A stretch of DNA of 64,000 nt from Tubulanus polymorphus (lineage: Eukaryota > Animalia > Nemertea): positions 1,533,355 through 1,597,354 of the forward strand of contig NC_134030.1 of assembly GCF_964204645.1 (NCBI RefSeq). The letters are read 5' to 3'. The position numbers were made by a program, and so were the translations under genes. Below are positions 4,856 to 33,383 of the stretch, in pieces. The notes beneath the pieces were generated by a model. It was not told where the DNA came from, ran no database searches, and saw only the letters and a list, made by a program, of their open reading frames with translations. Within the stretch, counting starts at the first letter, position 1, and each line of letters starts with the position of its first letter.

Positions 4856-4903
4856 TGTCAATCATCATATCAAGATTTGCAATCCCAGTTGCCTTCAAGT
4901 TTC

Positions 4904-5624
4904 ATATAGAGAATTAGTGGATGTGGTGTCCCTGGACCCCTACATGCACCATATAGAGAATTAGTGGATGTGGTGTCCCTGGACCCCTACATGCACCATA
5001 TAGAGAATTAGTGGATGTGGTGTCCCTGGACCCCTACATGCACCATATAGAGAATTAGTGGATGTGGTGTCCCTGGACCCCTACATGCACCATATAGAGA
5101 ATTAGTGGATGTGGTGTCCCTGGACCCCTACATGCACCATATAGAGAATTAGTGGATGTGGTGTCCCTGGACCCCTACATGCACCATATAGAGAATTAGT
5201 GGATGTGGTGTCCCTGGACCCCTACATGCACCATATAGAGAATTAGTGGATGTGGTGTCCCTGGACCCCTACATGCACCGTATAGAGAATTAGTGGATGT
5301 GGTGTCCCTGGACCCCTACATGTACCATATAGAGAATTAGTGGATGTGGTGTCCCTGGACCCCTACATGCACCATATAGAGAATTAGTGGATGTGGTGTC
5401 CCTGGACCCCTACATGCACCATATAGAGAATAAGTGGATGTGGTGTCCCTGGACCCCTACATGCACCATATAGAGAATTAGTGGATGTGGTGTCCCTGGA
5501 CCCTTACATGCACCATATAAAGAATTAGTGGATGTGGTGTCCCTGGACCCCTACATGCACCATATAGAGAATTAGTGGATGTGGTGTCCCTGGACCCCTA
5601 CATGCACCATATAAAGAATTAGTT
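4904..5624. repeat. 47-bp minisatellite, 15 full units (copy B 38998-39671, 14 units)
   Basis: ATATAGAGAATTAGTGGATGTGGTGTCCCTGGACCCCTACATGCACC, near-perfect units, no spacers. Confidence 0.98.
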
Positions 5625-5694: not shown

Positions 5695-8600
5695 ATGCCA
5701 AAAGCAACAAAAAAAACACGGGGCGCGGGCCCCTCACATTCAAGCCCGTATAATAAAGTAAGTACAAATTTACTGCTTCCATGCTTATTTATTCATCCCA
5801 TACTTAGTATTTTGTACCCCTGGGTCCAGTTTCACAAAAAGGATTAACGCCTAAATCGATTTAAGATAAACTGAATTAATGAAGAAATTAAATCGATTTA
5901 AGAGTTAAACCTGTTTGTGAAACTAGGCCCTGAATTGCATCTAGAATGAAAAAAAAGAAAAAAAAATATTGAAAATAACGTTGGTGAAATATTTCTGGAT
6001 CTTTCTGGATTTCTGCTCAATGCATCGTTTAGTAAAATATCGATATTCTCTAAAAGTAAAGATATAAGAATAAAAATATTGTATTGAATCGTGATTAGTT
6101 ACTGTATGCGCTGCTAGTTGTTGCCCAACCCATAGCCTCATTTCTCTCCATTCTAAATTTGCATTGTTTAACATTGTCTGGTCGCTATGGAAACTATTTA
6201 TTTAAGTTTCTTTGTGGTATCCATGGCAACAGTAACGTTTAGGTAGTGGCACCAATTATGGGTCCCAACGTTCCCATGGCGATACATGAGAACATTTATC
6301 CTATTTTTGACCTTCATGACGTAAGATGGTAGTGAGTCGATGACGTCATTTTCGTCTCACCACTAATGAAAAAAATGAAATGAAAAAAAAGGAAGAAATG
6401 GTTAGAATTACGTTTATGAAATTTTTCTGGATCGGCTAAATGTATTGTTCCATTAAATATCGACATTCTCTAAAATTATAGGCATCAATATCAAAATGAT
6501 GATACAGCAGACTCCGCTTAACTCTGTTCTATTTGGACCATTAATTAACCGAATACCAACTTTTTAAAATTTTAGGATTTTAACTTTAAGGATCAGAAAA
6601 TGTGTATGCAATTTCAACCGGGTACCGAGTAGGGTGGCCGAGTCTACTGTAGTCTGCTGCCCCCTCGAATCCATTACCTTATTATCTCTCAATTTGCATT
6701 GTTTGACCTCGTCTGGTTGCTATGGAAACTATTTAGTCATATCAGGAACGGTTTTTTTGAAGGTAACCAGTGGCAACAGTTAACAGGCGTGTCCGTCCTA
6801 GAGATAAACTGTCTGATTTCACAGCCACATCCGTCCTAGAGATAAACTGTTAGATAAACTCTGATTTCGCGTCTGTCCTATTTCTTGTCATTGTATGAAT
6901 ATGTTTTCTCTTTTATAGGGTACAGCGCAGCAACAACAACAACAACAACAACAACAGCAACAACAACAACAAAAATTTAATATTTCTATGTCCGGAATAG
7001 ACGTAAGTTATCGTAAACGCCTGTTTGAAGTCATCATTCTTGAGCTTGAAACCGAAATTTATATATATAGAATATTAAACCCTGCTTCTGCTACTGACAG
7101 GTAATGTCCGTCATACATTACTGCATCGTCAAATCTATACCAGGGTGCACCCAGGCAGATCGTTCGCATCATCACATGCAAAGGGCTGATTATTTTGGAA
7201 CCCAGTTTTTATCAGCTGGAACATTCTGCACATTCGACCATATTGATTGATAGCCCGTTATAGACGAGTGGAGAAAAACTGAAAAACCAGTTCGGAAAAA
7301 CTTTGATTGATTTCATTCACATTTACAGAAATTTGGTCCGACCCCAAAACCATTTACTTACACTATACAAATCAGATCAGGTTTTTAACATTGTCTTTGA
7401 TTGTATTTTCAGTTTTTGCCGACAACGCCGCCGAGCGGTACCTCGACACCGGTAAGTGATAACTATTTTCTAATAAATCACGCTTATTTCAATTTGTAAT
7501 TTGAAAATAGAGGGTAGTAGCTGTTTTGCATAAATTATGCTAATTAGGAATAAATTCAAATTCGATTAAGTCTCATCATCGTAGAAGTCATATATTAATG
7601 ATGCTATCTCTAAAGTTGTCATTTAAATTAAGTGTTATATTTACTACTTCATTTGCTTCATGACCCAAAAACCTCTACTATATAACTACTGGTTTTGTTC
7701 TAATCTTGGAGAATTTGCTGCAAAATTTACTTATCATTTGTTAAACAGTTTTTATTGGTTTACCTTTGTCAGCGATATGAAGTTGGCATTGAGCCAATTC
7801 ATGTAAAATCGCGGTACGTTTTTTTATGTGAGCATTTGTTTCATTGGTTCTCGGTTTAAACGACGTATAATCGATGCGATTGAAGACATGGCGAACCTCC
7901 GTCGATGACATGGTCAACTTTGTTAAAATTCTACGAAAAACTGTTTTTGGCGGGAAAATTCTTAGCTCTCGCGTATAAAATTGCAATGACCTCGATTGGG
8001 GGGCGTTGTCTCTACGAGCGAATGTGATTGGCTGTTTTTGGGATATACGGGGATTCCGGCGCTACTAAAATAATTATGGGAAAGCCGGATTGGCGAACGT
8101 TTCATTGGACTAGGTGCCGTATACATGCAAATTTCAAATGCTCATTGCTGATGAGAATGTAATTATTATCCACCATAGGTAATGTTTCATTTTAATACCC
8201 GGAGATTGATTTGATTGACACTGAAGTACAAGCGAACATTCACTTACACAAGGCCTCCACGTGCGCGCGGAGTGCTATAGACTGTTGCATACACAAACAG
8301 ACGCTCGTACAGTATACACTACTATAGTGATACTGTAAACGCTGCTTGCTGGCGCGTCTGACATTTCATCAACAGAAGATGAGCGCTATGTTTTCTGTTT
8401 GATATAATTTATAATAAATTGTAATTTCTTGTGACCTGAAAATATTAAGCAGAAAACTACAAGTATAGGTCGAGGTCTGAATATTGTAGTAGTAAATTCC
8501 AGGATTTAAAACGATCTAATACGCCAATTTCTTACTGCGCCGGTTTAGATTCCGCGGCCATACATTGCAAGAGGTTTCCAAGACTAAATATTCAGCCACC

Positions 8601-11600
8601 CTCTGATATGTGACACCATGTGAATTTTGTTTGAATATTTTTTCATATTTTGAAAAATATTTCTTTGAACATATAAAATAGTTTCCGTGCCGCGCCTACC
8701 TGTACCCTACGAAATGTATCTTTTTGGTCTTATTTGACAACAAAATAATTCTTTGAGAAAGATGAAATACAACATAGAACTTTGAAGTCACGAATTAAAA
8801 AGATTTTTCAAGCAATGCCATTACCCCAAACAACCTCTAGCTTTCAAGGTAAACCACACTTTGCCCATGGGCAATTTATTGAAAACCTGAATCAGTGATA
8901 CATGCATTCATGAATATCCATCTAATATTTTGTTTTATTTTATCTTTACAGGATTTATCACCGATACAGCACGTGGACGTAAGAGATTAAACATTGATCT
9001 TGAATTTTAAGTTCAAACTAATTTATTTTTTATCTCACTCGGGACTATAGTTATTGCGTTCACTTTGCGTCCAGTTGTCTCGGGTAGTTTTTGATTTATC
9101 GTGTTGATAATTGGTTTATATACTCAAACTCAAAATATCGGCGCAATTGGAATTAAGATGGCGCACTTGTATGTCCATTTTTTTCCCCGGCAAAATCAGC
9201 ACTTTAGCAGATTTTAAGGATCAATTCTGTTGTTATATTACATTGAAATCAGAGTTTAATATATATCGGTATAGAGCAGGTTTTTGCTCTAGTTATAAAT
9301 AAAGTTATAAATAATCTCATGACATGTTCTGTATATGTGTAGTGAGTTTCAATGTCTTTGGTTCCTTTTAAACCAGGGGGAGTTAAATTTGAAAATGTCA
9401 GATCGTCGAGCATTTCAGACCACTTCCAAAGTGGGTCCCTGCACCCCTAGTTATACCGTTAATATTTTAATAATACATTAATATTTTTATTTGATAGAAT
9501 ATATTGATATACCATACATTGATATCGGTCTTGTAATTGGATCAACAACCATGAGATCAAAACACAGCAAATATGAACCTGCTGTGAATCAATAGATTTG
9601 TGATAAATGTAATGAAATTGTTATTTTTCATATTGACTTTTTGAGTTAAGGGTCTGTTGTATAAGAGTATTTGGTCTCGCGTGTCAATGTATGATATCAA
9701 TCTGTTGTATTTCCTCGTTCCAATGTTTAAAAGGTGTTCGTCACCTTATATTAATAAACTACTTTAACCGTTATATGGCGCCATAAGTGTGGTATTTGAT
9801 TTATGGGATACCCGCATAACCAGCTATTCCACCAGATGGCGCAACGAGTAGTAGGTCGTTCGTTGTCAAAATTAGTTCATTTTCGATGAACTTTGAACTG
9901 GTTTGAAGAAGAAATACTTTCATTCTTCTACTCTGATATCGGTTTAGTTTTCATTAATAATTGATTCATTTAAGAGAACAATTCATTCAGATTTAATTGA
10001 AATGTACAAGAAAATCGAACGCAGACGACCAACTATTTACTAGCGACACCTGGTGGATCCTCGCCTGCCATAAGTGGAATCCTCGATTGCCACAGTAAGA
10101 CTGCGGGTATCCCATTGTTTGGCGTGTGAAGTAAAGTAAAGTTAGAAAACGGATGTTTAACTTTGTTGTGAAACGAAAGCGTTTTGGAGATTTTTAAACC
10201 AATCAAATCAATATTTTGATATTACGCTTGAAACCCTTCCCACTCATATTCTACGTACTAAGTATATATTCTTGTTTCCGTGGAAATCATGGTGAGTGGC
10301 GCCATCTATACAGTGGAGTTAGCTTTATAAATCGAGCATGCTTCGACAAGTGGCTCCATCTATTCCCTAATACTGAAGCGAGGTAACCAGCAGCGCCCTC
10401 ATATACAGGAAATGAACGCCTATCAAGTTTAACAATGCACGGTGTATTGACCACAGCGACCGGTGATAATTATATCAATGTTGATTAGCTATTGCCATAG
10501 ACAGGTCCGTAGCGTTTGACTGGCCAGAACGGGGCCCCCTAACCAAAACAAATTTTGAAAACGTGCCCAGATAAATTGCCTCTGGGAGATTGATTTAACG
10601 AGGTTTTGATTAAATGAACAAATTTTAATATTTGTAAGTTTAACATTTCTGTTTTTAATTTTTCTTTGCGAGGAACTGAATTTTCGAACCCCCCCGAACC
10701 GCCTCAAGCTACGTTCCTGATATAGTGCTAGCTATACCTGAATACTTTTCTCTTATTGAAATTGTCTAAAAAACCAGCACCTTGAACTAATGAACGTCAT
10801 AATGAAAATGTTTAAAAATTCAACCGTTAATGAATTTGACTAATGTATTTTTTTTATTTTCATTTCTAGCATCAGTTTGCCTCAGAGGCAAGGTCGCCGT
10901 CGCTTAATGTAAGTATCAGTGACGCCCTCAATCTCACATGCCTCACTTCCCTCCTAATGTAACCATTTTTATGAAATTCCTCAAGAAAATATATACTAGT
11001 AATCTTAGAATACACGTTTTTGTACCCAGACCCCTTCATTCTACTGAACTACCGTGTAATAAGTGCCTGTTGTGTTCATTTTCTGTTGCATTGATTTATA
11101 TATTATTTCTATTTACAGTTGTCAAACAACAGCAGCAGCAGCAACAGCAGCAGCAGCGCACCCCTCCCGCCGGAGACGCCTCCCGACTTGCAAGCAAGAA
11201 GTAAGTTCAGTCTTCAAATACAATTTCAACGCATTCAATTTTTTGTATGGCGTTAAAACGGTTAAAGTTGTGACTAGTTTTCATAACTCCGTGACGTCAT
11301 ATTTCCATCGAGTACCGGACCCTTTCCTATGTTTTTTGCCAATTTGGATTGAATGATCGCCAGCGGTTTTTCTATACGACCCGGCTCTGCTGTATTGCAT
11401 TTAGCCATCCTTTTTCTTGGCGTTTTTATAAGAAGGTGTTTGATTTTGTCTCTAAGGGATTTAGGAATTTAAGAGACACTTGTACTTTCTATGCAGTGAG
11501 TTTGTTCTGTTTTTGTTCCCTCGTGAATTTTATTTTTGTTTGAATCAAATCAAATCAGTGCATCTTTCTTGAATTGCGTGTATGTTATAATATTATGTAA

Positions 11601-14600
11601 GTTATAACGTTAAAATATCTGTTATATTTAAACCGAATATTTAATTGTTGTATTTTGAATGCGATAATGCCGCTCCCTGCTAAAGTCCAGCGTCGTCATC
11701 GTGAGGGATGCGGTCATCTGTTCGGGCCCTGATTACGTTCTGTGTTCATCCTGTTGGGCTACATCGGGCGTTATATGAGTTAATCCTTCCTCGACTTGCG
11801 GATTGTGGTCGGAAGATCTATGGGTTCGGGCCGATAAGTCCCGGAAACAGAAAGTACAGTTTCTGCCGATGTGCCCATTGATGTCTCTATTTCAGAACAT
11901 CACAGCGGTCGCCGGCTGTACAAGCACGGTCGGCTTCCCAACTCCTTTCTCTGAGGAGGATCGCTGGTTCTCTAGTAACGGTCAGTCACCAGTCAATCAA
12001 CGGTTCAGCTGGTTCAGTTTCCCAGGTATCGGCGCGCGACAGTCGGGATACCTGCACAGGAACTCAGGTCCGGTCCGGGCTACTCCGAGCACCGGTCCGG
12101 TCCAGGCCTCACTGGGTAATGAACATCTGGTCCGGTCCGGGCGGCTTCGAGCACCGGTCCGGTCCAGGCATCACCAGATACTGAACATCCTGTCCAGTCA
12201 GCTCCGTGCACCGGTCCGGTCCAGGCATCACCGGGTACTGAACATCTGGTCCGGTAGCTTCGAGAACTGGTCCGGTCCAGGCATCACCGGATACTGAACA
12301 TCCTGTCCGGTCAGCTCCGTGCACCGGCCCGGTCCAGGCATCACCGGATACTGAACATCTGGTCCGGTCAGCTTTGAGAACCGGTCCAGGCATCACTGGG
12401 TACTGAACATCTGGTCCGGTAGCTTCGAGAACTGGTCCGGTCCAGGCATCACTGGGTACTGAACATCTGGTCCGGTAGCTTCGAGAACTGGCCTGGTCCA
12501 GGCATCACCGGGTACTGAACATCTGGTCCGGTCAGCTCTGTGCACCGGTCCGGTCCAGGCATCACCAGTTACTGGTCCGGTCCGGGCAGCTTTGAGCACC
12601 AGTCCATTCCAGGCATCACTGAGTACTGAACATCCAGTCTGGTCCGGTCCAGGCAACACCGGGTACTGATCATCCAGTCCGGTCCGGTCCAGGCATCACT
12701 GGGTACTGAACATCTGCTCCGGTAGCTTCGAGAACTGGTCCGGTCCAGGCATCACCGAGTACTGAACATCTGGTCCGGTAGCTTCGAGAACTGGTCCGGT
12801 CCAGGCATCACCGGGTACTGAACATCTGGTCCGGTAGCTTCGAGAACTGGTCCGGTCCAGGCATCACCGGGTACTGAACATCTGGTCCGGTAGCTTCGAG
12901 AACTGGTCCGGTCCAGGCATCACTGAGTACTGAACATCCAGTCTGGTCCGGTCCAGGCATCACCGGGTACTGATCATCCAGTCCGGTCCGGTCCAGGCAT
13001 CACCGGGTACTGAACATCCAGTCTGGTCCGGTCCAGGCATCACCAGTTACTGAACATCCAGTCCGGTCCGGTCCAGGCATCACTGGGTACTGAACATCCA
13101 GTCCGGTCCGGTCCAGGCATCACCGGGTTCTGATCATCCAGTCCGGTCCGGTCCAGGCATCACCGGGTACTGAACATCCAGTCCGGTCCGGTCCAGGCAT
13201 CACTGGGTACTGAACATCCAGTCCGGTCCGGTCCAGGCATCACTGGGTACTGAACATCCAGTCTGGTCCGGTCCAGGCATCACCGGGTACTGAACATCCA
13301 GTCTGGTCCGGTCCAGGCATCACTGGGTACTGAACATCCGGTCCGGTCCGGTCCGGTCCAGGCATCACCGGGTACTGAACATCCAGTCCGGTCCGGTCCA
13401 GGCATCACCGGGTACTGAACATCCAGTCTGGTCCGGTCCAGGCATCACTGGGTACTGAACATCCGGTTCGGTCCGGTCCGGTCCAGGCATCACCGGGTAC
13501 TGAACATCCAGTCCGGTCCAGTCCAGGCATCACCGGGTACTGAACAGGGTTCGTCGCGGTGCTTGAAAAGCTTGAAATGGCTTGAATTTGAAAAATACTA
13601 CTCAAGCGCTTGAAAACAGCTTGAAAATAGATCGAAAGCTTGAAATAATTATTTTTGACTTGAAATAAAAAGTTATGGCTTGAAATGCTTGATTATCACA
13701 AATTTTCTTCTTCGCGAATTTTTTTCGATGAAATCGCAGACAGAATATGTTCTTGAGTTGTTTCTACGCGTGCGTCATGTTTTAGGCATCAATAAAGAAA
13801 TTAATTGAATTGTATTGAATCGCTATGAGGCTCTTGTGGTGAAACTCTACGGTGTCTGGAGACATGAACATACGGGGAAATTTCAGTCATGCATGTTATC
13901 GAGCATTGATGTAAAATGGCATTGAAATCCCACACCAGGAGTGAGAGCCATGTTGAAGGCACCGCGACCTAGTCAAAGTCATTGAACATTACAAATTTCG
14001 TATTAGGCCATACAAAAATCAAGGTCTGTTTGCCGTCATCCGACCGACCCGACTTCAAAGGTACCCAGTGGAAACTTTTTTCTTGGATTCATTGAAATAA
14101 ATTGTATTTTTGATACAAATGGCCGACCCACTGCCGATGTATGAGCTATGTATGTTTGAAGTTAAGTGTGCATCATGTGAAAACATGCCTCGACTATTTA
14201 CTTGAAGTTTTCCAGGAAACTGGCAGTGTTCCAATAAGCTGCCATTCATTCTAAAGCTGGTAATGTTATAGCGTGCATATATTCAATCTACTGTTTCATT
14301 TTGAACGCAGATTTCGGATGTTGTTTCCGCTAAAAGTGGTGATGATAAATTTGTTGTTTTTTTTTGCCCCAAAATTTTGCAAAAAAAATGATGCTACCTT
14401 CCTACTGACTTATCCCAAAAATTTTAGTAGGTGTAACGGCAAAACAGACAATTAATTTGGGATGGCCAAATATCCAAATCTTGATTGATATGAATATTTA
14501 AGCTAGGAAATGCTGAAAATCATTGTGATGAACAGGTTTCATCTCTAACAGAATCGTATCAACTCGGAGGTTCCACTGGAATCAAAATTTTACCTCTTTT

Positions 14601-17600
14601 TTAACATTTTTATACGAACCTGTTCAAAATAGGCAAATTGGCTGCGACTAACGAAAATTGCTTCCAACGTGCCTTAAAAAATAGCTTGAAAATGGTATAA
14701 ATCTAGCTTGAAATGGCTTGAATTTCACCTGAGCTTGAGACAATGAACCCTGCTGAACATCTGGTCCGGTCAGCTTCCAGCACCGGTCCGGTCCAGGAAT
14801 CACCGGTTACTGAACATCCAGTCCGGTCAGCTTCCAGCACCGGTCCAGGCATCACCAGGTACTGAACATCCGGTCCGGTCAGCTTCCAGCACCGGTCCGG
14901 TCCAGGCATCACCGGTTACTGGTCCGGTCCGGGCAGCTTTGAGCACCGGTCCGGTCCAGGCATCACTGAGTACTGAACATCCAGTCCGGTCCGGTCAGCT
15001 CCGAGCACCGGTCCAGGCATCACCAGGTACTGAACATCTGGTCTGGTCCGGGCGGCCTGGCATCAATGTTTCGAATTTAAAACATGGTTATCATGGTTCT
15101 AGGTTTGGTAGAGGGCGCTCTTCTACCAGATGCAGGAGCGAGGTCACCTTCACGGAGATCGAGATCGAGGGATTATGATTGATTCTGTAGGAACCATCAT
15201 CATTCATCAGTTCAGGTCGAGGGACCGTTTAGGAAGTTCACGTCTTTCACGTCGAGGGACCGTTTAGGAAGTTCACGTCTTTGACGTCGAGGGACCGTTT
15301 AGGAAGTTCACTTCTTTCACGTCGAGGGACCGTTTAGGAAGTTCACGTCTTTCACGTCGAGGGACCGTTTAGGAAGTTCACGTCTTTCACGTCGAGGGAC
15401 CGTTTAGGAAGTTCACGTCTTTCACGTCGAGGGACCGTTAAGGAAGTCGTCACAATAATCAGGATTTCCGCGATTTCGAAAGTCAGATTTTAAACTTGTT
15501 ATTGTCATTGTAAGCTACCGCAGTTACAGGTAAGCCTATTCTTGATTGCCCGAGACAGGCGTGCAGATATTGTTCCCGACTTAAGTTTTTGGTTGATTTT
15601 CTTGTGACTTGTTTGTTTTAGGGGTGAGATGGATGAGCCTTATTGTTTTTTGACATATATAGGTCATCCAAGATGGCCGCCACAGCCATTTCAATGTGTA
15701 AAATAGCCATTTTGAAGCTTGTGACAACTCTACAATCTACAGTTTCAAACCAATTTGCCAATTACTTATTCTGTGGTTTCATAATGGTAAGAGGATGAGC
15801 CTTATTGTTTTTGACATATATAGGTCATCCAAGATGGCCGCCACAGCCATTTCAATGTGTGAAATAGCCATTTTGAAGCTTGTTACCGCTCTACGGACTT
15901 AAGTTTTAAGCTTAAGACTTAAGATGGCCACCACAGTTATATCAATGTCTTAAATCTTATCCGATTTGGAGCTTGTTACTACTTCCTAACAATACCGTAA
16001 GATGTAGAGGTTTAGAGGTTTATAATTTCATTCATACTTGTACTGTGGTTTATTTATGGTGGTCAGAGGATGAGACCTATTACAATTTGCATTCTCTACT
16101 TGACTCACTGGTCAAGGGTTAATATCTAGTTTGATAAATGTGGAGCATGTCGGTGAATCATCCCCCCCCCCCCGGACTCTGATCTCAATGTCTGATGTCA
16201 ATCGTCAGCAGTTTCAATGGAATAGGCTCGATTAGGTGTGGAACAAGTGGAATCCTCGATTGCCACAGTCGAACCTAGAGTATTAAGAGCTCAATTAGGT
16301 TCTTCTTTGCGTCTCTTCTCCAGTTGGAGTGCTCCAGTTTCCACCGAATGGAGGAAGATTCGAGATGTGCAGATTCAAGTCCACCATGCGGACTCCGGCT
16401 CCGGCTCCGGCAGCTCAAGGTTCAGCCCGAACTCACACAATGCCATCTCAAGCATCCGTACTTTCTCAAGCGGCTACTAATGCTGTTTGGAGAACAAGTG
16501 CACAGCTCCAACATTCTCGTGCCCCTTCTGGTCAGAATAATTCTAGTTCATATCAGGGAATGCTCCTAAAAGGAGCTCTTCCTCTCGGAGAAACTCAAAA
16601 TGAATGCTCGGGGCCAGTGAGAGGTTGTCTATAACGAGCAGCCACCTACTGATCCGGCGTTCCCGGGTCGTATCACGGCGGCTACTGTCTTCAATTCTGA
16701 ACACCTCCCGACATGCGCCCGAAAGCAGGTCACGAGACACTAATCTCGTTAGCTCTCAAAGATCTGGCCAAAAAGAGAGCAATAGAACCAGTACGGGACG
16801 AAGCCACATCTGGCTGGTTTTCATGAATATTTATGCTCCTGAAGACCACAGGGCGTCGATGGACTGTCATTCCTCGAGCGGCACCTGGATATCCCGAGGC
16901 TTCCGATGACTAAAACAGGGAGGTAATTCAAGGTCTCCGTCGAGGTTAATGGGCGGCTTCATTGGACCTGAAAGATGTCAGGTTCCTATTCACCCGAAAT
17001 CTCATCAATTTCACAGAATGAAGTGGAAACGCCGCCAGTTCCAGTTCAGGTCTCTTCCAGTCGGCCTCAGTACAGCCCACGCCCTGGGTATTTACCAGCT
17101 TGGGTCAAGTCCAGAAGGTACACTACACTCCAGGGCTGGGTTTCATAGATATGGAAGAAAAATAATTCCAGGGAACATTTTGAAATTTGTCAGTTATAAC
17201 CATGGTTTCTCATTGTTAGTATGGTGGTTGAGGATTTATCCCTTTGGATAACTTTGATACTCAGTCTATGAAACCGGGTCCTGGAGTATTTGTCTGTTGG
17301 TTTACCTCGACGACTGGTTACTAGTACCAAACTCGACTATAGAATGTCAGGAGGCGGTGACCGCGGTCGACCGCTGTCGTAGACTTAGTTCACCAGTTCC
17401 GCGTAAACTAAGTAAAATCTCACTTGATGCCGTCCCAACAGTTCACATCTCCGGATCAGCACGGTCTTTCCGTCCATGGCTCGAGTAGCCAAACTTCAAG
17501 AAGCGTAGTTACCACAAACGAGAGGACAGCTAGTTATCGGTGACGCCTGTGGCTAAATGCAATACCGCACTGCCAGGGGTCGTATCTCTGGCTATCTACA

Positions 17601-20600
17601 CATTCAGAGAATATTAACTAAAACCATAGGAAAGGGTCAAGCACTACTCCGAAAAAAAACTAATTTTATTTCCAAAAAATTATGATATTATATGGATTGC
17701 ATGCTGTGTGGAAGAAGTTTTCAAAATTATTTAGGAGCTTATTATAATTTGAATGCATGAATTGAGAGCAATTTGAAATGTGTTGATATCCAAAAGTGTC
17801 TCCATTGACTTCACTCATTCACCTGATGAAGCTTCTATACATTAGTACCCAAAGCTTGTGTGTCAAATAAACTAGTTACACGTCCTATAAAGTATTACTT
17901 GTCTCGTTATATATTCTAAACCCCAGTTAACAATTCCAGTAAGTCAGGTTTAGGGAATAGATATTTAAACCTTGAGATGAAACCGATGTGATACAATTCC
18001 AGTAAGTCAGGTTTAGGGAATAGATATTTAAACCTTGAGATGATACCGATGTTATACAATTCCAGTAAGTCAGGTTTAGGGAATAGATATTTAAACCTTG
18101 AGATTAAACCGATGTAATACAATTCCAGTAAGTCAGGTTTAGGGAATAGATATTTAAACCTTCAGATGAAACCGATGTGATACAATCCCAGTAAGTCAGG
18201 TTTAGGGAATAGATATTTAAACCTTGAGATGAAACCGATGTGATACAATTCCAGTAAGTCAGGTTTAGGAAATAGATATTTAAACCTTCAGATGATACCG
18301 ATGTGATACAATTCCAGTAAGTCAGGTTTAGGGAATAGATATTTAAACCTTCAGATGAAACCGATGTGATACAATTCCAGTAAGTCAGGTTTAGGGAATA
18401 GATATTTAAACCTTGAGATGAAACCGATGTGATACAATTCCAGTAAGTCAGGTTTAGGGAATAGATATTTAAACCTTCAGATGATACCGATGTGATACAA
18501 TTCCAGTAAGTCAGGTTTAGGGAATAGATATTTAAACCTTTAGATGATACCGATGTGATACAATTCCAGTAAGTCAGGTTTAGGGAATAGATATTTAAAC
18601 CTTCAGATGATACCGATGTAATACAATTCCAGTAAGTCAGGTTTGATATTTAAACCTTGAGATGATACCGATGAATTTAGCAATTTTGAATGAATTAAAC
18701 CAATATGAGATTTCGATCCTAAGAATATTGGAAGCTTGTGTTTAACGTTACTAAATATTGATATTATATAAAGCTAGAAGGACACGAGCGTATCCATTTT
18801 TTGCCCGATCGCGACGATTAAATTCGCCGGTGAATTTATACGCCCGATACGAGCGGGTACCGATCTATCTATAAATCGGCCGTCACGGTGATTTCGTCGC
18901 CCGCCGACATTAAACATGTTCGATATTTACGCCGGTGTTCGGGTCACTTGTTAATTCGCTCGGCTTGTCGGCAAGCTTAAAAAGATTTAGAAAAAACTAG
19001 AAATTCTCATTCCTGAATGAACTGGATTCATCTGGGTTCAGTTTCATGAGACACAGTTCAAACTGCTCTTGAATTTGAGTTTGTAATTAATGTATGTGAT
19101 TATAATGAATTGTATTTTTGTTTTACAGCTTTGGCATTTCGGTTAAGTCGTGCGTTCCGGCGGGAGGAGTTCGTCAGAATATTTCTACCGGAGTGTAAGT
19201 AGTTTAACTATTTTCATACAATATCATTTAGTGTGACGTGTGTTACTGATTCAGGCACGGATCCAGGAATGTTTCCAAGACGGGGTTCATAAAAATGCTG
19301 ACTAAAATCTCTAATAATAGCCGGGGCCTATACGGCATATTTTTTGGCCAAACATAAGGCCTTTTTTTAATAGCATGGTTTGGTTGCTCCCAAAATTTGA
19401 AGAAACATAAAATAAAAAAGAATTAGAAAAAAAATTTTTTATTCCTGTCTGTGAAACAAATTCAGTGAAAAACCGAGCAAAAAAGATTTTTCACCTCGGC
19501 CGAATGAGAATCCTGGATTGAACGATGAAACAATTGAAAAACGCGAGGTTCTTTTTTGATCGCAGTGTGCAGAATTCAAACTTTCCAAGAATCATTTGTT
19601 CGGACATATGTATATTGCCCTATTGACAGTTCCCTCTTCCTTCTAAAAGTGATTTTATCTCACTGAGGGAATTTTTAAAAAATTTTCTCTGAAATGATAT
19701 GGTAGCGTTTTTTTTTTTTGCTTTAAAAATTTTTTGGTAGCCGATCAGCGGGGTCACGACCCCTGAAACCCTCCCTGGATCCGCGCCTATGATATCTCCT
19801 CAAAATCTAATAAAAACTTTCAATGAATTAATGCTGTAATGACGATATGTAGCCATCTGTCTATTTGAATGCATTTGCAAAAAGACAAAAAGAAATAGTA
19901 GCAGAATTTTGGCTAAAAGTTTAGAATACCCAAATTCAACATTGCTTGCAGCAGACGGAATTTCCGCCATTTTGGTTAACAGGGGATTCCCCCCTCCGGT
20001 ACTTCCCATGATCAATAGTGTCTATGACGCGTTGCGTACGGAATGCCATGGAATTCCCTCACATGATTTATGATAATAATGTTTACTTGCATTCTGATTG
20101 GTTAAAATCGCGTGTAGTTTGAACGTAGGCAATGTTTACATTTGTAACGTCACAGGCGAGTCGCTGACATTAACGTAGTCATTGAGTTAACATTATCTTG
20201 CACTGAATGGTGATATCAATCGCATTCATTTTATAAATTTTTTGAATATGAATTTGTTTTTATATATCAACTGCGAGTAACAGTGTTACGCTATTGAGTC
20301 TTAAGAGACAGCCTTTATGGACCTTATTGGTTGTTATAACTCACAAGCTGACTGAGTTAGCATTCTGGATCCGTCAGATTAGTTACTTCTAGAAAATATG
20401 TTAGTCACATTTTCTGACTATATTCTGGAAAACAGTGGAAGCTTGTATCCACCCTAGATTAGAACCAATCAGAATAGAACCAATCAGAATACACTATTTT
20501 ACAGAAAATATATTTATGACAATTGCGTAAGGTTTTAGTAAAATAGTGTTTTTTCTCGAGTAGTTGCCGAAGAAGCATAAAAATTTGATTCAATTTCATT

Positions 20601-22713
20601 CAGATTTAAACAAACAAATCGAATTTCATTTCATTCAGCGCAAACTTCAAATCTAATTAAAATTTTGTTCAGTATGAATAAGTTGCAAATCATTGAGAGG
20701 AAAAAATAATTAATTGTGTTACTTAAAAAAATCACAATTGTACTGTGTTTATCAAAACAGGAGACCACAGGACCTTTGGTCCTCTAGTATTCTTTTCCTA
20801 GTTATTCCAAAAACACTAAAACAGTCCAATCAGCGATCACTGCCAGACCAACACGATTACATTGAAATCAAACTTAAGTAACATCAGGCGCCCCCTGTTG
20901 GAATAATATTCATAGCCGTAGCATCGAAACCATTCGACTTGTTGTTTAATGTATTTCTCTCTATTTTTATTTTACAGTGATGATCATTTTACAAGACTGC
21001 CCGTTTGGGGACTTGGTGGGGGAATTCAAAAGAAACTTGGTTCCCGATAGGATACCACCACCGGTTAATCCTATGTCGCCCGCTGCTGCCCCTCCCCCAC
21101 GTCCATTAAATTCGCCTCAGCAGCGGCCTGTCAGACAGCCGCCCCCGGCCGCCACTCGTTCGTCAGACAGAGTCCGGGGACGGCTGTTTGAAGGAGATCT
21201 GACGGAGGTAAGAATCTTTATTTGTTTTCATATTTTATTCAGGATATCAGTTGAAGTTCAGCAAATAAATTACCAGACCTGTAAACAGAAGAGTAGTCAT
21301 AAATTTCCATTTGCGGGTAAAACCCCATAGTCGAAAACCTTCGGTTATTGATCTATATCTGCTTAAGACCAATGGTTGTACACACGAGTGCGAAAACTTA
21401 TCGCTCAAACTTTGATTGTATCCATGGTAATGCGTACAGTATACTATGCGTGACTTACCGTTTCCTATCACTGGAATACAATACTGTTTTTGACCATGAG
21501 CGCCATCTGCGGCGGTCATAACGGACTGACTGGTGATTGGCTGAAATGCTCGTCTACCGTGGTGACGATTATTCGGTGTTACATGTGCAGCAGACACGTC
21601 TCTGAATATCTAACATTTGATTGTTGTAACTCATCGGGAAAAATGTGTTTATGGGTCGATTGAGAAAATTGGCTGCGTACGTCAAGAAGGCGGCTGATAT
21701 TTGTATCGTGTGACCCCTCGTCCCGGTAATATGCCGACCCACGTACACCTGAGACCAGTTGCATAGTCAGAGCTTAGAATTAAGACCGTTCTAAGACCAA
21801 CTTAGTTCTATAGCCAATCTAATAACTTAAGACCAGTCTTTAGATTTAAGACCACTTTTGGACTTAAGTCTTGACCATGGAATCAGCCCCAGATGCTTAT
21901 TCCGCTGTATTGGATGCTGACGTGCTCGTGTCTTCCAGCAATGTTGTTATTCACCAAAAATATCATGTTTTGTTCGAATAACACAATTCATCTGAGTCTA
22001 GGTTTAACGGATGACACGTTCAAACAGAACTACGAAATCAATATCAAAAGTCCTTTTATATTGAAACGGTCCCAGAAGTCCCTGTTATAATGGGTACTTT
22101 TTCAAAAAAAGTAACGAGAACTCCGATGGCTTTCCGTATCGGTAAAAACTAACTATTTCTATGAGCGTCACTCGTAGATTTACCGAAACGCCACCTTGTG
22201 ACACGATATCCTAACTACGTATAGGTGTTTTATTTGCTGAATCGCTGGTTTCTCATTCTCATTTTTTATACTTGTGTTTAATTTTATACTAAACAAATTT
22301 TTCACTTTTTCTCTTTACAGACACGACCACCGCCAAAAAAAACAAGAACTAAAAGGAAAAGAAAAGTTGCGGTCGTCGTGGCTCCGCAGGGAGGAGGAGC
22401 AAGAGTGGTCCCGGCGGATGGTGCGGCTGACGAAGGTAATCGGGAGGAAGGGGAGGGGATAAATAGGAAGCGGCCGAGGAGGGATGGTGGTGGGGCTGGG
22501 GATGGTGCGGGTCCTGCTCCTCCTGCTCCTCCATCCGTATCTCGGGCGGTCACTCGTTCACTCGCCAAAAAGCTGGCGAGTGAACGAGTGGCCCGAGAGG
22601 TAGAGGTGGTGGCCCGACATACGGATGGAATGTGGGAGGAGCGGCTTCGTTCGGGGACAATTCCGGATTTGTTAACTGATTTAAAAAATATTCTTTCAGT
22701 GAAGGGATATTAG
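5695..22713 (+). CDS. Spliced micro-exon gene, copy A; 340 aa low-complexity, probably disordered nuclear protein of unknown family
   Basis: Exons 5695-5757 (MPKATKKTRGAGPSHSSPYNK), 6919-7002 (GTA-Q15-KFNISMSGID), 7413-7451 (FLPTTPPSGTSTP), 8952-8978 (DLSPIQHVD), 10870-10908 (HQFASEARSPSLN), 11119-11200 (LSNNSSSSNSSSSAPLPPETPPDLQAR), 19129-19194 (TLAFRLSRAFRREEFVRIFLPE), 20978-21207 (LMIILQDCPFG...RGRLFEGDLTE), 22321-22713 (TRPPPKKTRTKRKRKV...SVKGY*). All have polypyrimidine-YAG acceptors (ag at 5690-5691 for the first) and GTAAGT/GTAAGA donors; intron phases 0,0,0,0,0,1,1,0 join without a stop. Confidence 0.85.
5819..5932. mobile_element. Short fold-back MITE; similar short elements at 17127-17287 and 21748-21892
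   Basis: GGGTCCAGTTTCACAAA / TTTGTGAAACTAGGCCC inverted ends. Confidence 0.6.
7751..8877 (+). mobile_element. Helentron-like non-autonomous element (HINE-type), present only in copy A
   Basis: Absent at 41795-41805 in copy B. Subterminal inverted repeats GGTTTACCTT (7757) / AAGGTAAACC (8846) followed by the palindrome TTGCCCATGGGCAA; inserted in a T run. Confidence 0.75.
9803..10115. mobile_element. MITE
   Basis: 14-bp TIRs ATGGGATACCCGCA / TGCGGGTATCCCAT plus an inner inverted pair CCACCAGATGGCGC / GCGACACCTGGTGG. Confidence 0.65.
10502..10719. mobile_element. MITE
   Basis: Imperfect TIRs CAGGTCCGTAGC / GCTACGTTCCTG. Confidence 0.55.
13545..14752. mobile_element. Non-autonomous TIR DNA transposon with 5-bp TSD (hAT5-like)
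   Basis: Ends CAGGGTTC...GAACCCTG flanked by CTGAA on both sides, splitting a GGGTACTGAACAT satellite unit; subterminal GCTTGAAA repeats. Confidence 0.85.
14006..14467. mobile_element. MITE nested in the hAT5-like element (copy B 46778-47237)
   Basis: Imperfect ~30-bp TIRs GGCCATACAAAAATCAAGGTCTGTTTGCCGT / ACGGCAAAACAGACAATTAATTTGGGATGGCC. Confidence 0.7.
15216..15447. repeat. 35-bp tandem repeat, 6 full units (copy B 47934-48095, 4 units)
   Basis: GTCGAGGGACCGTTTAGGAAGTTCACGTCTTTCAC. Confidence 0.97.
15510..16160. mobile_element. Probable non-autonomous element with internal ~161-bp repeats (CAAGATGGCCGCC core); copy B about 48160-49110
   Basis: AT-rich block interrupting the DIRS remnant; 2 internal units in A and 4 in B. 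Ends not precisely defined. Confidence 0.5.
17820..17905 (+). mobile_element. Possible Penelope-like terminal remnant with a degenerate hammerhead core (copy B 50750-50835)
   Basis: CTGATGAA, an imperfect stem GCTTCTA/TAGTACC, CAAA in place of GAAA, then GCTTG...AATAAA...GTC. Confidence 0.35.
17930..18672. repeat. 63-bp tandem repeat, about 12 units (copy B 50860-51981, about 18 units)
   Basis: ACAATTCCAGTAAGTCAGGTTTAGGGAATAGATATTTAAACCTTGAGATGAAACCGATGTGAT. Confidence 0.97.
19252..19791. mobile_element. MITE
   Basis: TIRs AGGCACGGATCCAGG / CCTGGATCCGCGCCT. Confidence 0.65.
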
Positions 22714-23144
22714 GTGCCTTGAACGCATGAGTCGTTCATGCGCGCCTAATATGCCTTCACTGAAAAAAAATCAACTATAACATGTACCACATATTTTTTG
22801 ATTTAATTTTAGTCCAATTCCACAATTATTTCGGCTTACAATAGTGTCTTCAATTCTTTAAAGCCCAAAGCACCTTTTTGACTCAACATCCAGTATGAAG
22901 GTGGCCGGGAATCGGGCCTGTTTTCTTCCATTTTTGTATCCCGCCCAGCATACTGGTTGTTGACTCGAAAAGGTGCTCGCTCTGGGAGCTTATCAAAGGC
23001 AGGTGATGGGAAAGGTGCCATCACACACTCTCCTTTGATAAGTTTCCTAGAGTGTCACGGGCTTTAACGGGTTGAATTCACTATAATACCAATTTTCCAA
23101 AATCAATTTAATTTCTTTCAGGCCATTCTTTTTCCATGTTTTTC

Positions 23145-32272: not shown

Positions 32273-32343
32273 GTTCTTTTTTGATACGGGCTAGAAGTTG
32301 AGGGGCCCGCGCCCCGGGTTTTCTTTAAAGCTTTTGGCATTAT
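32273..32343 (-). pseudogene. Inverted paralogous start exon (MPKALKKTRGAGPSTSSPYQK), truncated at the junction
   Basis: Reverse complement matches 5692-5757, including its acceptor and upstream intron; no GT donor follows. Confidence 0.85.
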
Positions 32344-32413
32344 CTAGAAAAACAAGTAAAAATTATTAAATCATTTGAAAATATATCAGTCAGTCTTATT
32401 CTGGTTCAGTGAA

Positions 32414-32756
32414 CTAATTCTCTATATGGTGCATTTAGGGGTCCAGGGACACCACATCCACTAATTCTCTATATGGTGCATGTAGGGGTCCAGGGACACC
32501 ACATCCACTAATTCTCTATACGATGCATGTAGGGGTCCAGGGACACCACATCCACTAATTCTCTATATGGTACGTGTAGGGGTCCAGGAACACCACATCC
32601 ACTAATTCTCTATACGATGCATGTAGGGGTCCAGGGACACCACATCCACTAATTCTCTATATGGTGCGTGTAGGGGTCCAGGAACACCACATCCACTAAT
32701 TCTCTATACGATGCATGTAGGGGTCCAGGGACACCACATCCACTAATTCTCTATAT
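32414..32756 (-). repeat. Inverted copy of the 47-bp minisatellite, about 7 units
   Basis: Reverse complement of the 4904-5624 unit, sitting upstream of the paralogous start exon. Confidence 0.95.
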
Positions 32757-33029
32757 GTCGAGGGAGCTCTATCAATCAAGGAACAGTCGGCTCACAAGCA
32801 GCCCCTGCCCAAAAGGTTTTGACATTATATTTTCAAAAGCTCTAGTTGTTCTGTAGAACCGAGAGCGGAGCTCTGACTTGTTCCCCTCACTGCTGAGGTC
32901 TACTTTCTCTGATTCGCTGATTGGCTTCTCTTTGGTACATTTTAGATGATCAAAAACTAGAAACTGTCATGCGTTTATTCATTTGGGTATATGTTAAAAT
33001 TCTTTTACAGTAATGGCATATTAGGCACA

Positions 33030-33383
33030 TCAAAACAAATCCGGAATTGTCCCCGAACGAAGTGGCTCCCTCCACTCTCCATCAGTATGCCGGGCCACCA
33101 CCTCTACCTCTCGGGCAACTCGATCACTCGCCAGCTTTTTGGCGAGTGAACGAGTGACCGCCCGAGATACGGATGGAGGAGCAGGAGGAGCAGGACCCGC
33201 ACCTGCCCCAGCCCCACCACCATCCCTCTTCGGCCTCTTCCTATTTATCCCCTCCCCTTCCTCCCGATTACCTTCGTCAGCCGCACCATCCGCCGGGACC
33301 ACTCTTGCTCCTCCTCCCTGCAGAGCCACGACGACCGCAACTGGTACTTTTCGGTTTCTCATGGTTTCCCCACCATCTTTCAA
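33030..33383 (-). pseudogene. Inverted paralogous terminal exon of the micro-exon gene (open frame, isolated)
   Basis: VAVVVALQGGGARVVPADGAADEGNREEGEG...LRSGTIPDLF is nearly identical to the 22321-22713 translation; the 3' flank GCCTAATATGCC is also shared. Confidence 0.85.

Follow-up and report, generated by a model that had tools for sequence, protein, structure and literature searches.

How does a tandem gene family that evolves in concert keep, or make, variation in the parts that matter? This old question is raised by a locus of the free-living ribbon worm Tubulanus polymorphus. The window, i.e., the whole stretch of DNA analysed here (64,000 nucleotides of contig NC_134030.1, positions 1,533,355 to 1,597,354 of the forward strand), consists of two units of tandem arrays with a period of about 33 kb, and each unit holds one gene with nine coding exons together with minisatellites. 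A first-pass annotation had proposed the gene in both units, with a frame joined from very small exons. We asked whether this gene is real and where, and possibly why, its copies differ.

All nine exons of the first gene (copy A, plus strand) were re-derived independently, and their lengths and phases were verified arithmetically, one exon at a time. Exon 1 (5695-5757, 63 nt, phase 0-0) carries the ATG, with an acceptor 3 nt before it, and ends at a GTAAG donor. Four further exons of phase 0-0 follow, namely the poly-Q exon 2 (6919-7002, 84 nt), the T/S-P-rich exon 3 (7413-7451, 39 nt), exon 4 (8952-8978, 27 nt), and exon 5 (10870-10908, 39 nt). Exon 6 (11119-11200, 82 nt, phase 0-1) encodes poly-S and then a P-rich part, exon 7 (19129-19194, 66 nt, phase 1-1) lies within a variable helix-like segment, and exon 8 (20978-21207, 230 nt, phase 1-0) is variable in its first 35 nt and conserved in the rest. 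Exon 9 (22321-22713, 393 nt, consisting of 390 nt and the TAG) encodes basic clusters, an acidic stretch, and a conserved, putatively helical C-terminal domain. The exons sum to 1023 nt, equal to 340 codons and the stop; the codons split at exon joints are ACT and TTG, and none of the exon pieces is interrupted by a stop in frame. The acceptors all consist of a pyrimidine tract closed by CAG or TAG, and GTAAG was found at all eight donors; five fixed letters repeated eight times are far beyond chance. Nine of nine splice-site pairs are strong and compatible in phase, and the nine-exon structure is confirmed in the sequence. The symmetry ascribed to exons 2 to 5 (phase 0-0) and exon 7 (1-1) also held, giving five symmetric exons of nine, or five or six symmetric small exons per gene, and by arithmetic only, exons 2 to 5 or exon 7 could be skipped without frameshift. 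However, the gene is not wholly invisible to ORF scanning, as had been claimed, because open stretches of 126 and 143 codons enclose exons 8 and 9, respectively.

In the second gene (copy B, plus strand), exon 1 (39742-39804) is identical to that of copy A, and exons 2 (40965-41048), 4 (41875-41901), 5 (43794-43832), 7 (52437-52502), and 9 (55649-56041) were found in the same order. Exon 3 (41460-41498) is of a type different from that of copy A, exon 8 (54285-54514) has two residue changes near its start, and exon 6 (44043-44118) is shortened in frame by 6 nt. Since exon 6 is thus 76 nt rather than 82 nt long, copy B encodes 338 residues; the frame is intact in both genes, as the first-pass annotation had stated, but the length of 340 residues given there applies to copy A only.

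The letters that vary among copies begin immediately after the acceptor located 3 nt upstream of the ATG, which suggests that at least one additional, non-coding 5' exon precedes coding exon 1. Five sequencing runs had matches to the stretch of exons 1 to 6 (5,701 letters). Their contigs cover the introns and contain no splice joints; because the contigs include introns, the runs behave as DNA. Almost none of this stretch was present in one run guessed as RNA.

Other elements of the units were also located. A 47-nt minisatellite lies directly upstream of exon 1 of copy A (4903-5623, plus strand; 15.3 copies at 98% by TRF) and before copy B (38997-39670); it is kept at about 99% before a copy on contig C3 and also adjoins an inverted exon 1 fragment. 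An inverted, truncated relic on the minus strand (32284-33383) is composed of an exon 9-like open frame, 47-nt repeats, and an exon 1-like piece. Intron 3 of copy A, but not of copy B, contains a 1.1-kb high-copy repeat (7758-8875, no strand assigned) flanked by a 7-nt duplicated target; the empty-site joint (7750 to 8875) is present in DNA contigs, and the depth over the repeat is about 100-fold above that of its flanks. Decayed retroelement-like frames were also seen in the introns. Rfam and tRNA scans across the whole window gave no matches. Within exon 9 there is a nested palindrome (22530-22629, plus strand) with two arm pairs of 18 and 20 nt and a folding energy of -56.1 kcal/mol (z = -10.3). 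At the end of the gene (22694-22765, plus strand; 56022-56093 in copy B), the stop codon lies in the 5' arm of a long hairpin that precedes an A run and has a folding energy of -45.9 kcal/mol (z = -10.8). This hairpin is near-invariant among seven diverged copies, and 34 examples were found, all at gene ends of the micro-exon family; its origin from a MITE was rejected, since it was seen nowhere but at these ends. In a distant paralogue, a hairpin of unrelated sequence occupies the same place.

The first-pass annotation had recognised no protein family, and the searches, run on single exons or on the exon 9 alignment, were all blank. Six exon translations gave nothing near the cutoffs in Pfam, exon 9 gave zero matches in HMMER against 1.84 billion representatives, the feature search of the ESM Atlas gave no match, and viral and metagenome contigs scanned with the exon 9 alignment yielded no relative. 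The best hit of the PDB profile search was not significant (E = 0.16). In the AF2 model of exon 9, residues 72-128 form four helices (pLDDT 60-75; 54 overall), and the best Foldseek match had an E value of 4, the model being too uncertain for a fold search to mean much. By inspection, the 21 residues encoded by exon 1 are basic and hydrophilic and lack a hydrophobic core, in agreement with the reported absence of a signal peptide, and no exon piece contains a hydrophobic stretch of membrane length. The basic hydrophilic N-terminus and two classical basic clusters in exon 9, again by inspection only, together with the overall composition and the low-confidence model, are consistent with the earlier suggestion that the predicted protein is probably nuclear. 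The N-terminal half would be disordered, as read from composition and the same model (pLDDT 54). In our own impression, the segment encoded by exons 6 to 8 looks F-box-like.

The family has been expanding, as proposed: the genome was found to contain no fewer than 34 copies whose last exon is intact, in tandem arrays on contigs C6, C3, and C8 and in both orientations. Counts for other parts of the gene were 28 for the region of exons 1 to 3, 30 for exons 5 and 6, and 31 for exon 7, with 34 for the full-length open exon 9. The units on C6 are spaced by 30-36 kb, the 5' 1.8 kb is 97-98% identical across the C6 copies, and the exon 9 protein is 98-100% identical in 30 of the 34 open copies. The copies are therefore many, at least 97% identical, and carried in large repeat units, as in ampliconic families. 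Exon 9 is open at all 30 loci read, and at 28 of them an open exon 8 bounded by AG and GT lies within reach. All nine exons are intact in copies A and B and in one C3 copy, as well as in one C8 copy, where they measure 69, 45, 51, 30, 45, 61, 66, 233, and 387 nt. All exon indels among copies are multiples of three, and frames and splice sites are retained despite 10-20% non-coding divergence between copies. Many broken, inverted fragments of the gene are also present, and the clearly dead ones contain stops; thus, where constraint is lacking, decay can be seen. Exon phases and splice sites are retained by three diverged subfamilies. One of these, 45% identical in protein, has symmetric micro-exons, a 0-1 exon, a 66-nt 1-1 exon, a 1-0 exon of about 236 nt, and a terminal exon. 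It comprises about nine copies in 97%-identical blocks scattered over C11, C9, and C8, and the shared 3' module is preceded by repeated micro-exon cassettes. The modular design proposed from the window is thus borne out, as the paralogues hold the phase scheme but their symmetric small exons vary in number and length.

Divergence among copies is confined to exons, namely exons 1 to 7, which is the main new result. Between copies A/B and the C3 copy, introns 1 to 4 differ at 91 of 3622 sites (2.5%), whereas the figure for the non-repetitive exons (1, 4, 5, and 7) is 44 of 195 (22.6%); exons 1 to 7 overall diverge by about 20%, and exons 8 and 9 by 1.5-2.2%. The borders are sharp. Exon 1 has 15 differences in 63 nt as against none in its 60-nt flanks, and in close copies the 60-nt flanks of exons 1 to 4 have 0-2 differences each. 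Across 27 copies, no site varies in the final 60 nt of intron 7, whereas 12 sites are variable in the first 35 nt of exon 8. In one DNA run, the contigs collapse over the introns and end at the borders of exons 1 and 2. In exons 1 to 7, copy A and the C3 copy differ at 41 of 89 synonymous sites (46%) and 38 of 307 non-synonymous sites (p = 6e-11), and in exons 8 and 9, copy A and the more distant paralogue C8c differ at 38 of 162 and 32 of 450 sites, respectively (p = 2e-7). The predominance of synonymous substitutions in the predicted frame supports coding constraint, the ratio of replacement to silent change among copies being about 0.2-0.45. Synonymous sites are about 18-fold more diverged than introns.

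Copies A and B differ by 0.3-1.5% in their introns, yet five exons are identical and the differences are clustered in one exon; exon 3 has five differences, four of them synonymous, between identical flanks. Between A and the more distant C8c, exons (21%) and flanks (20%) are equally diverged, and for exons the three distances (A-C3, A-C8c, and C3-C8c) are of similar size, as at a plateau. The full-length comparison covered three close copies and four distant ones, and the remaining copies were typed by identity percentages only. On this typing, exons 1 and 3 fall into identity classes of 86-100% among copies, exon 7 has several classes over 31 copies, and the 17 C6 copies have at least 16 different triples of exon 1, 3, and 7 classes. 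The exon variants are discrete types, common to several copies and found in mosaic combinations. Since the introns are near-identical and the small exons diverged, the array stores many versions of one protein. Two other origins of the pattern were dropped: introner-type mobile introns, as the introns are alike only at matching positions, and processed copies as donors for exon-limited conversion, as the fragments seen retain introns.

The explanation that we favour, and consider rather probable as a whole, is concerted evolution of arrays of a real, lineage-restricted protein-coding family, in which old exon types are kept and reshuffled; its support is comparative, and the gene is presumably expressed. 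The predicted protein would have three parts: a disordered N-terminal half built from frame-neutral micro-exons, rich in S/T-P sites and in runs of poly-Q and poly-S; a short helix-like segment (from the end of exon 6 through exon 7 to the start of exon 8), the part most variable between paralogues; and a conserved C-terminal part with two basic clusters of the nuclear-targeting type and a helical domain of about 60 residues. Unequal exchange and gene conversion would homogenise introns, spacers, and exons 8 and 9, both among the units of one array and across the C6 and C3 arrays, and the small N-terminal exons would persist as several old, diverged types, possibly maintained by selection for diversity. 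Exchange inside the long introns would reshuffle these types, so that nearly every copy would have a different N-terminal combination on a constant C-terminal module. As for the cellular role, we can offer a guess that the protein is a nuclear adaptor whose variable part serves as a fast-changing binding surface. By analogy with ampliconic germline genes, one may also guess that dosage or genetic conflict lay behind the amplification of the family.

Conversion tracts would be expected to run across exon borders, and the borders of exons 1 to 4 are sharper than conversion and selection would predict unaided; a very large number of conversion events, or flanks that carry conserved splicing signals, could be needed in addition. 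An alternative, which we consider doubtful, is that exons evolve faster than introns through a process that reads exon borders, either error-prone or RNA-templated repair aimed at transcribed, spliced sequence, or selection for nucleotide change in the mRNA, for example to escape small RNAs from the family's own hairpins and inverted fragments, with the protein partly preserved. The array would then be, with the same modest likelihood, a germline-encoded diversity store subject to RNA-guided or transcript-templated change or to an RNA-level arms race with its own small RNAs, and silent sites in exons of 27-84 nt would turn over about tenfold faster than the introns that they touch. Divergence does begin and end within a few bases of the splice sites, synonymous sites are affected no less than replacement sites (pS 0.46 vs 2.5% in introns), one arginine codon is changed at two positions with the residue kept, the plateau-like exon distances agree with such a process, as does the 18-fold synonymous excess, and inverted exon fragments and two very stable hairpins per unit or its neighbourhood could yield double-stranded RNA. 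However, the exons of distant paralogues are no more diverged than their flanks, A and B share five identical exons despite their intron differences, and the variants are shared, discrete types. Conservation is highest in exons 8 and 9, although these account for 60% of the mRNA and contain the hairpins. The substitution spectrum (17 transitions and 27 transversions) has no deaminase-like bias, for which reason deaminase-type hypermutation was dropped. The equal divergence of exons and flanks in distant paralogues, the clustered differences between A and B, and the shared mosaic types argue for old types rather than a steady exon mutator.

It is improbable, in our opinion, that the arrays are a satellite-like segmental amplification carrying a dead or never-expressed gene relic whose frames are open only owing to the youth of the copies. 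Minisatellites and repeats make up most of each unit, broken and inverted fragments are many, the possible RNA run lacks the exons, and no homologue was found in the Pfam, HMMER, viral, or metagenome searches, all of which speaks for a relic; but frames and splice sites are held at 10-20% non-coding divergence and in the 45%-identical subfamily, synonymous change strongly exceeds replacement change in the predicted frame, exon indels keep to multiples of three, and it is the clearly dead fragments that contain stops. The spread over three contigs might also be explained if the gene were cargo of a large mobile element or provirus, as the occurrence on C6, C3, and C8 in both orientations, the 97%-identical blocks of the second subfamily on C11, C9, and C8, and the decayed retroelement-like frames would allow. 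We regard this as very unlikely: the copies lie head-to-tail at a regular period and not as dispersed single insertions, the unit contains only the gene and minisatellites and no transposase, integrase, or capsid-like open frame, the viral contigs have no relative, and the gene-end hairpin occurs nowhere outside the family. Least credible, to a degree that we can nearly discount it, is membership in the class of schistosome micro-exon genes (MEGs), with secreted proteins varied by micro-exon skipping. The MEG products all have a signal peptide, the coding region consists mostly of very small exons, and the class is apparently restricted to flatworms (PMC4350168). The likeness to MEGs noted in the first-pass annotation holds for the architecture, i.e., runs of tiny frame-symmetric exons between long introns (here four consecutive ones, each skippable), a skipping-compatible design, and a multi-copy, lineage-restricted, fast-changing family. 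It does not extend to the features that define the class: the N-terminus is basic and hydrophilic, without a signal peptide on inspection, and the protein looks nuclear; small exons (up to 84 nt; seven exons of 27-84 nt) provide 400 of 1023 coding nt, or 39%, and not most; diversity is stored as exon versions across gene copies; no sequence relation to MEGs or to anything else searched was found; and the host is a ribbon worm, of a different phylum.

The favoured reading, old exon types within arrays homogenised elsewhere, has partial parallels in other systems. The ampliconic germline families of mammals and flies (SPANX, Slx/Sly, TSPY, and Stellate/Su(Ste)) share with the present family near-identical copies that number in the tens and lie in large repeats, tandem or palindromic, small, lineage-specific, largely disordered proteins of nuclear type, coding change faster than that of introns, and inverted fragments nearby. 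Kouprina and colleagues reportedly found in 2004 that the coding sequence of SPANX-A/D changes faster than its introns. These families, however, have neither the micro-exon design nor the sharp split into a variable N-terminal and a constant C-terminal part. In recently expanded families of conotoxin and snake-venom PLA2 genes, exons diverge at several times the rate of the adjoining introns, with synonymous change also raised. Hyperdivergent exons and conserved introns are thus common to both; those genes, however, encode secreted toxins in which replacement exceeds silent change, whereas here replacement is well below silent change and no secretion signal was found. At HLA loci, introns are said to be homogenised while the peptide-binding exons keep old lineages, as Cereb and colleagues (in 1997) and Bergstrom and colleagues (in 1998) reportedly described. 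In MHC-type families, short-tract conversion mixes signatures among tandem paralogues (PMC5470263). Young introns as against old exons are the feature in common, but the predicted protein here is not of the membrane or immune kind, the variable units are exons of 27-84 nt, the borders are much sharper, and synonymous change dominates.

Standard gene finding would miss or collapse families of this kind. Micro-exon genes are known from parasitic flatworms, where their products are secreted; the present family belongs to a free-living ribbon worm, and its protein is non-secreted and probably nuclear. Its diversity is held in dozens of gene copies and not, as far as is visible, by splicing. Near-identical introns beside strongly diverged tiny exons, silent sites included, make the array an unusually clean natural case for the question of how a concerted family keeps or makes its variation. 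Since all copies lie in one assembled genome and have sharp exon borders, the competing models, namely selection against conversion, exon-directed mutation, and RNA-level conflict, can be distinguished in this family.

In the present study, we found that the window, which spans G000:C6:1533355-1597354, comprises two units in head-to-tail orientation, each about 33-34 kb long, roughly 98.5% identical to each other and rich in minisatellites. The first-pass annotation had proposed a nine-exon micro-exon gene in copy A (5695-22713), with the reading frame also intact in copy B (39742-56041). We re-derived this model by searching for acceptor- and donor-bounded open pieces of the lengths that it gave, and all lengths, phases and splice sites of copy A were recovered exactly. 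The exons measure 63, 84, 39, 27, 39, 82, 66, 230 and 393 nt (1023 nt in total), with phases 0-0 in exons 1 to 5, 0-1 in exon 6, 1-1 in exon 7, 1-0 in exon 8 and 0 in exon 9; every acceptor has a pyrimidine tract and CAG or TAG, and every donor has GTAAG. Copy B is indeed intact, its exon 6 being shorter by 6 nt, in frame. Frames were verified arithmetically, and each exon was translated separately. The observation is confirmed, and the splicing of the model is predicted.

Intron 3 of copy A contains a 1.1-kb very-high-copy repeat (7758-8875), with read depth about 100-fold above its flanks and a 7-nt target duplication. Copy B lacks it, and it is a recent insertion, later than the A/B duplication; inspection of its ends revealed no obvious terminal inverted repeats. 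In intron 6, broken open frames (16226-17485), between GC-rich 40-57-nt minisatellites at 12072-15048, appear in our own reading of the translation to carry a reverse-transcriptase-like motif. A 47-nt minisatellite (4903-5623 and 38997-39670; also positions 1-1460 of the genomic piece L044) always abuts coding exon 1, with 15 to more than 31 units that are about 99% identical even before the divergent copy on contig C3. Variable letters start directly after an acceptor lying 3 nt upstream of the ATG, and therefore a non-coding exon upstream of coding exon 1 is likely; such an exon was sought and none was found.

The family is far larger than the first-pass annotation could see. Exon 9 has 34 full-length open copies on contigs C6, C3 and C8 (protein identity 87-100%), besides many broken fragments, which do contain stops. 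Copies of the other parts number 28 for the exon 1-3 region, 30 for exons 5-6, 31 for exon 7 and 34 for the hairpin at the gene end. The C6 array is interrupted every 95-130 kb by a rearranged unit (G000:C6 about 0.67-0.69, 1.04-1.05, 1.235-1.244, 1.332-1.339, 1.492-1.498, 1.619-1.627 and 1.720-1.727 Mb), which gives it a higher-order period; in these units, fragments of exons 1-3, 5-6, 7 and 9 lie on the minus strand, partly in tandem. On C8, six partial exon-9 copies, covering its first 91 codons, stand in tandem with a spacing of 2.7 kb (G000:C8:15158588-15172302) and adjoin an intact gene copy. Between copies A and B, an inverted relic (32284-33383, minus strand) packs three parts into 1.1 kb: an exon-9-like frame open over 117 codons, a stretch of 47-nt repeats and, last, a piece resembling exon 1. 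Its appearance is that of an old, compact junction between two genes, and similar inverted, stop-containing pieces occur in at least eight other C6 units.

Comparative evidence argues that the gene is real, with splicing and expression predicted. Exon 9 was open in 30/30 fetched loci, and exon 8 was within reach, open and AG/GT-bounded in 28 of them. All nine exons are intact in the C3 copy, which belongs to a second array. Two C8 paralogues have the same plan (69, 45, 51, 30, 45, 61, 66, 233 and 387-393 nt) and a candidate additional symmetric exon, and exon lengths differ between copies only by multiples of three. For substitutions counted in the predicted frame, pS and pN were 0.46 and 0.12 for exons 1-7 of copy A and the C3 copy (p 6e-11), and 0.24 and 0.07 for exons 8-9 of copy A and one C8 paralogue, C8c (p 2e-7). 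The plan is also kept in a distant subfamily, which is present on C11, C9 and C8 as about nine blocks of 97% identity. Its exons comprise numerous symmetric micro-exons, one exon of phase 0-1, one of 66 nt and phase 1-1, one of 236 nt and phase 1-0, and a terminal one; identity is 36-37% over the whole last exon and 45% over the C-terminal 65 residues. The 35 nt before the exon-8 acceptor are 94% identical between this subfamily and the window gene, and the exons are unalignable as DNA. The combination of open frames, shared plan and silent excess would be difficult to account for if these pieces were not translated in this frame. In G000:C11:2074000-2086075 (pieces L043 and L031), tandem micro-exon cassettes, with exons of 36 and 48 nt spaced by about 320 nt, sit upstream of the shared 3' module.

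Sequencing runs, five matching and one possible RNA run, were compared over 5,701 letters spanning exons 1-6 of copy A. Contigs of the five matching runs extend across the introns, and therefore these runs behave as DNA. Contigs over exons 1-6 had no splice joints, the matching runs being DNA-like and the possible RNA run nearly empty here.

In translation, exon 1 is basic, and exons 2-6 encode a poly-Q run, a poly-S run and six S/T-P sites; the micro-exons of paralogues differ in sequence yet are equally P/S/T-rich. A helix-like rhythm of hydrophobic residues runs through exon 7 and the first ~12 codons of exon 8, and the remainder of exon 8 is proline-rich. Exon 9 encodes two basic clusters of classical nuclear-targeting type and an acidic stretch, and its C-terminal 60 residues do not vary within the main family and can still be recognised in the distant subfamily. 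AF2, given the exon-9 alignment, predicted with modest confidence that the first 70 residues are disordered and that four helices follow at 72-128. Exon-wise queries of Pfam, HMMER, ESM Atlas, PDB, Foldseek and viral and metagenome contigs gave no family, fold or homologue, in line with the novelty proposed earlier. The overall inference of the first-pass annotation is supported, as judged from sequence, by a 34-copy family, a modular micro-exon plan in paralogues and the lack of a recognised family. The family's likeness to schistosome micro-exon genes (MEGs) stands for architecture and fails for membership: MEG products all have a signal peptide and are encoded mostly by tiny exons, and they are apparently confined to flatworms (PMC4350168), and the window family departs from these defining features. 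Ampliconic germline gene families are closest in genomic behaviour, and families with conserved introns and divergent exons in evolutionary pattern.

At the gene end, a 72-nt nearly perfect hairpin (22694-22765; copy B 56022-56093; -45.9 kcal/mol, z -10.8) includes the stop codon in its 5' arm and precedes an A run. It occurs only at 34 gene ends and in six fragments, and is almost invariant among copies that are 10% different elsewhere. In the distant subfamily, a longer hairpin, unrelated in sequence, occupies the corresponding place relative to the stop codon (L031:1193-1294). Possible roles of the hairpin are in 3'-end formation, in cleavage or in the control of translation. The coding sequence of exon 9 also contains a nested palindrome (22530-22629; -56.1 kcal/mol, z -10.3) with two arm pairs, of 18 and 20 nt; it underlies the most conserved peptide and is not present in the distant subfamily.

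Divergence between copies is concentrated in particular exons. In comparison with the C3 copy, 91/3622 clean sites differ in introns 1-4 (2.5%) and 1.5-2.2% in exons 8-9, whereas 44/195 differ in the non-repetitive exons 1, 4, 5 and 7 (22.6%), and divergence is similar in exons 2, 3 and 6, which are rich in repeats. Each 60-nt flank of exons 1-4 has 0-2 differences. Between copies A and B, introns are 0.3-1.5% different and five exons are identical; within the 39 nt of exon 3 there are five changes, of which four are silent. Across 27 copies, no site varies in the last 60 nt of intron 7, against 12 in the first 35 nt of exon 8. In one C8 paralogue, exon 7 and the exon 8 start differ almost wholly from copy A, whereas the intron flanks are 92-97% identical. 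When unfetched copies were typed by percent identity to short exon-plus-flank queries, many classes were interleaved along one array (exon 1, 86-100%; exon 3, 86-100%; exon 7, 92-100%), and 17 C6 copies gave at least 16 different triples of exon 1/3/7 class. Exon-7 types and exon-8-start types combine in mosaic fashion. In a deep DNA run, the intron contigs are collapsed pieces of even depth ending at the borders of exons 1 and 2, as expected for many copies that share their intron sequence and differ in their exons.

Our preferred explanation, held tentatively and at slightly less than an even chance within the overall account, is that old exon types are kept in a concertedly evolving array, rather than that a process directed at exons operates. 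The small N-terminal exons would be old types, retained because conversions overwriting them would be removed, and exchange inside the long introns would reshuffle them. HLA genes likewise have homogenised introns beside old exon lineages. Neighbouring copies differ by whole-exon packets, and the variants are discrete types common to several copies. Around exons 5-6 of the C3 copy, a diverged block reaches into the intron, as a conversion mosaic would produce; tandem families offer well-documented cases in which short-tract conversion intermingles signatures (PMC5470263). Exons have a lower transition/transversion ratio (0.63) than introns (1.2), which would fit an older divergence, although the difference is not significant.

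However, the borders of exons 1-4 are sharper than the retention of old types predicts. These borders and the silent-site excess are explained by an exon-directed process, which would be either change templated by transcripts or selection acting on the mRNA sequence, but such a process fits poorly with the identical exons shared by copies A and B and with exons 8-9 being strongly conserved. Furthermore, exons are 21% and flanks 20% diverged between distant paralogues, and therefore there is no standing exon mutator. Exon-confined hypervariability inside a homogenised array is the feature of this family most worth following up.
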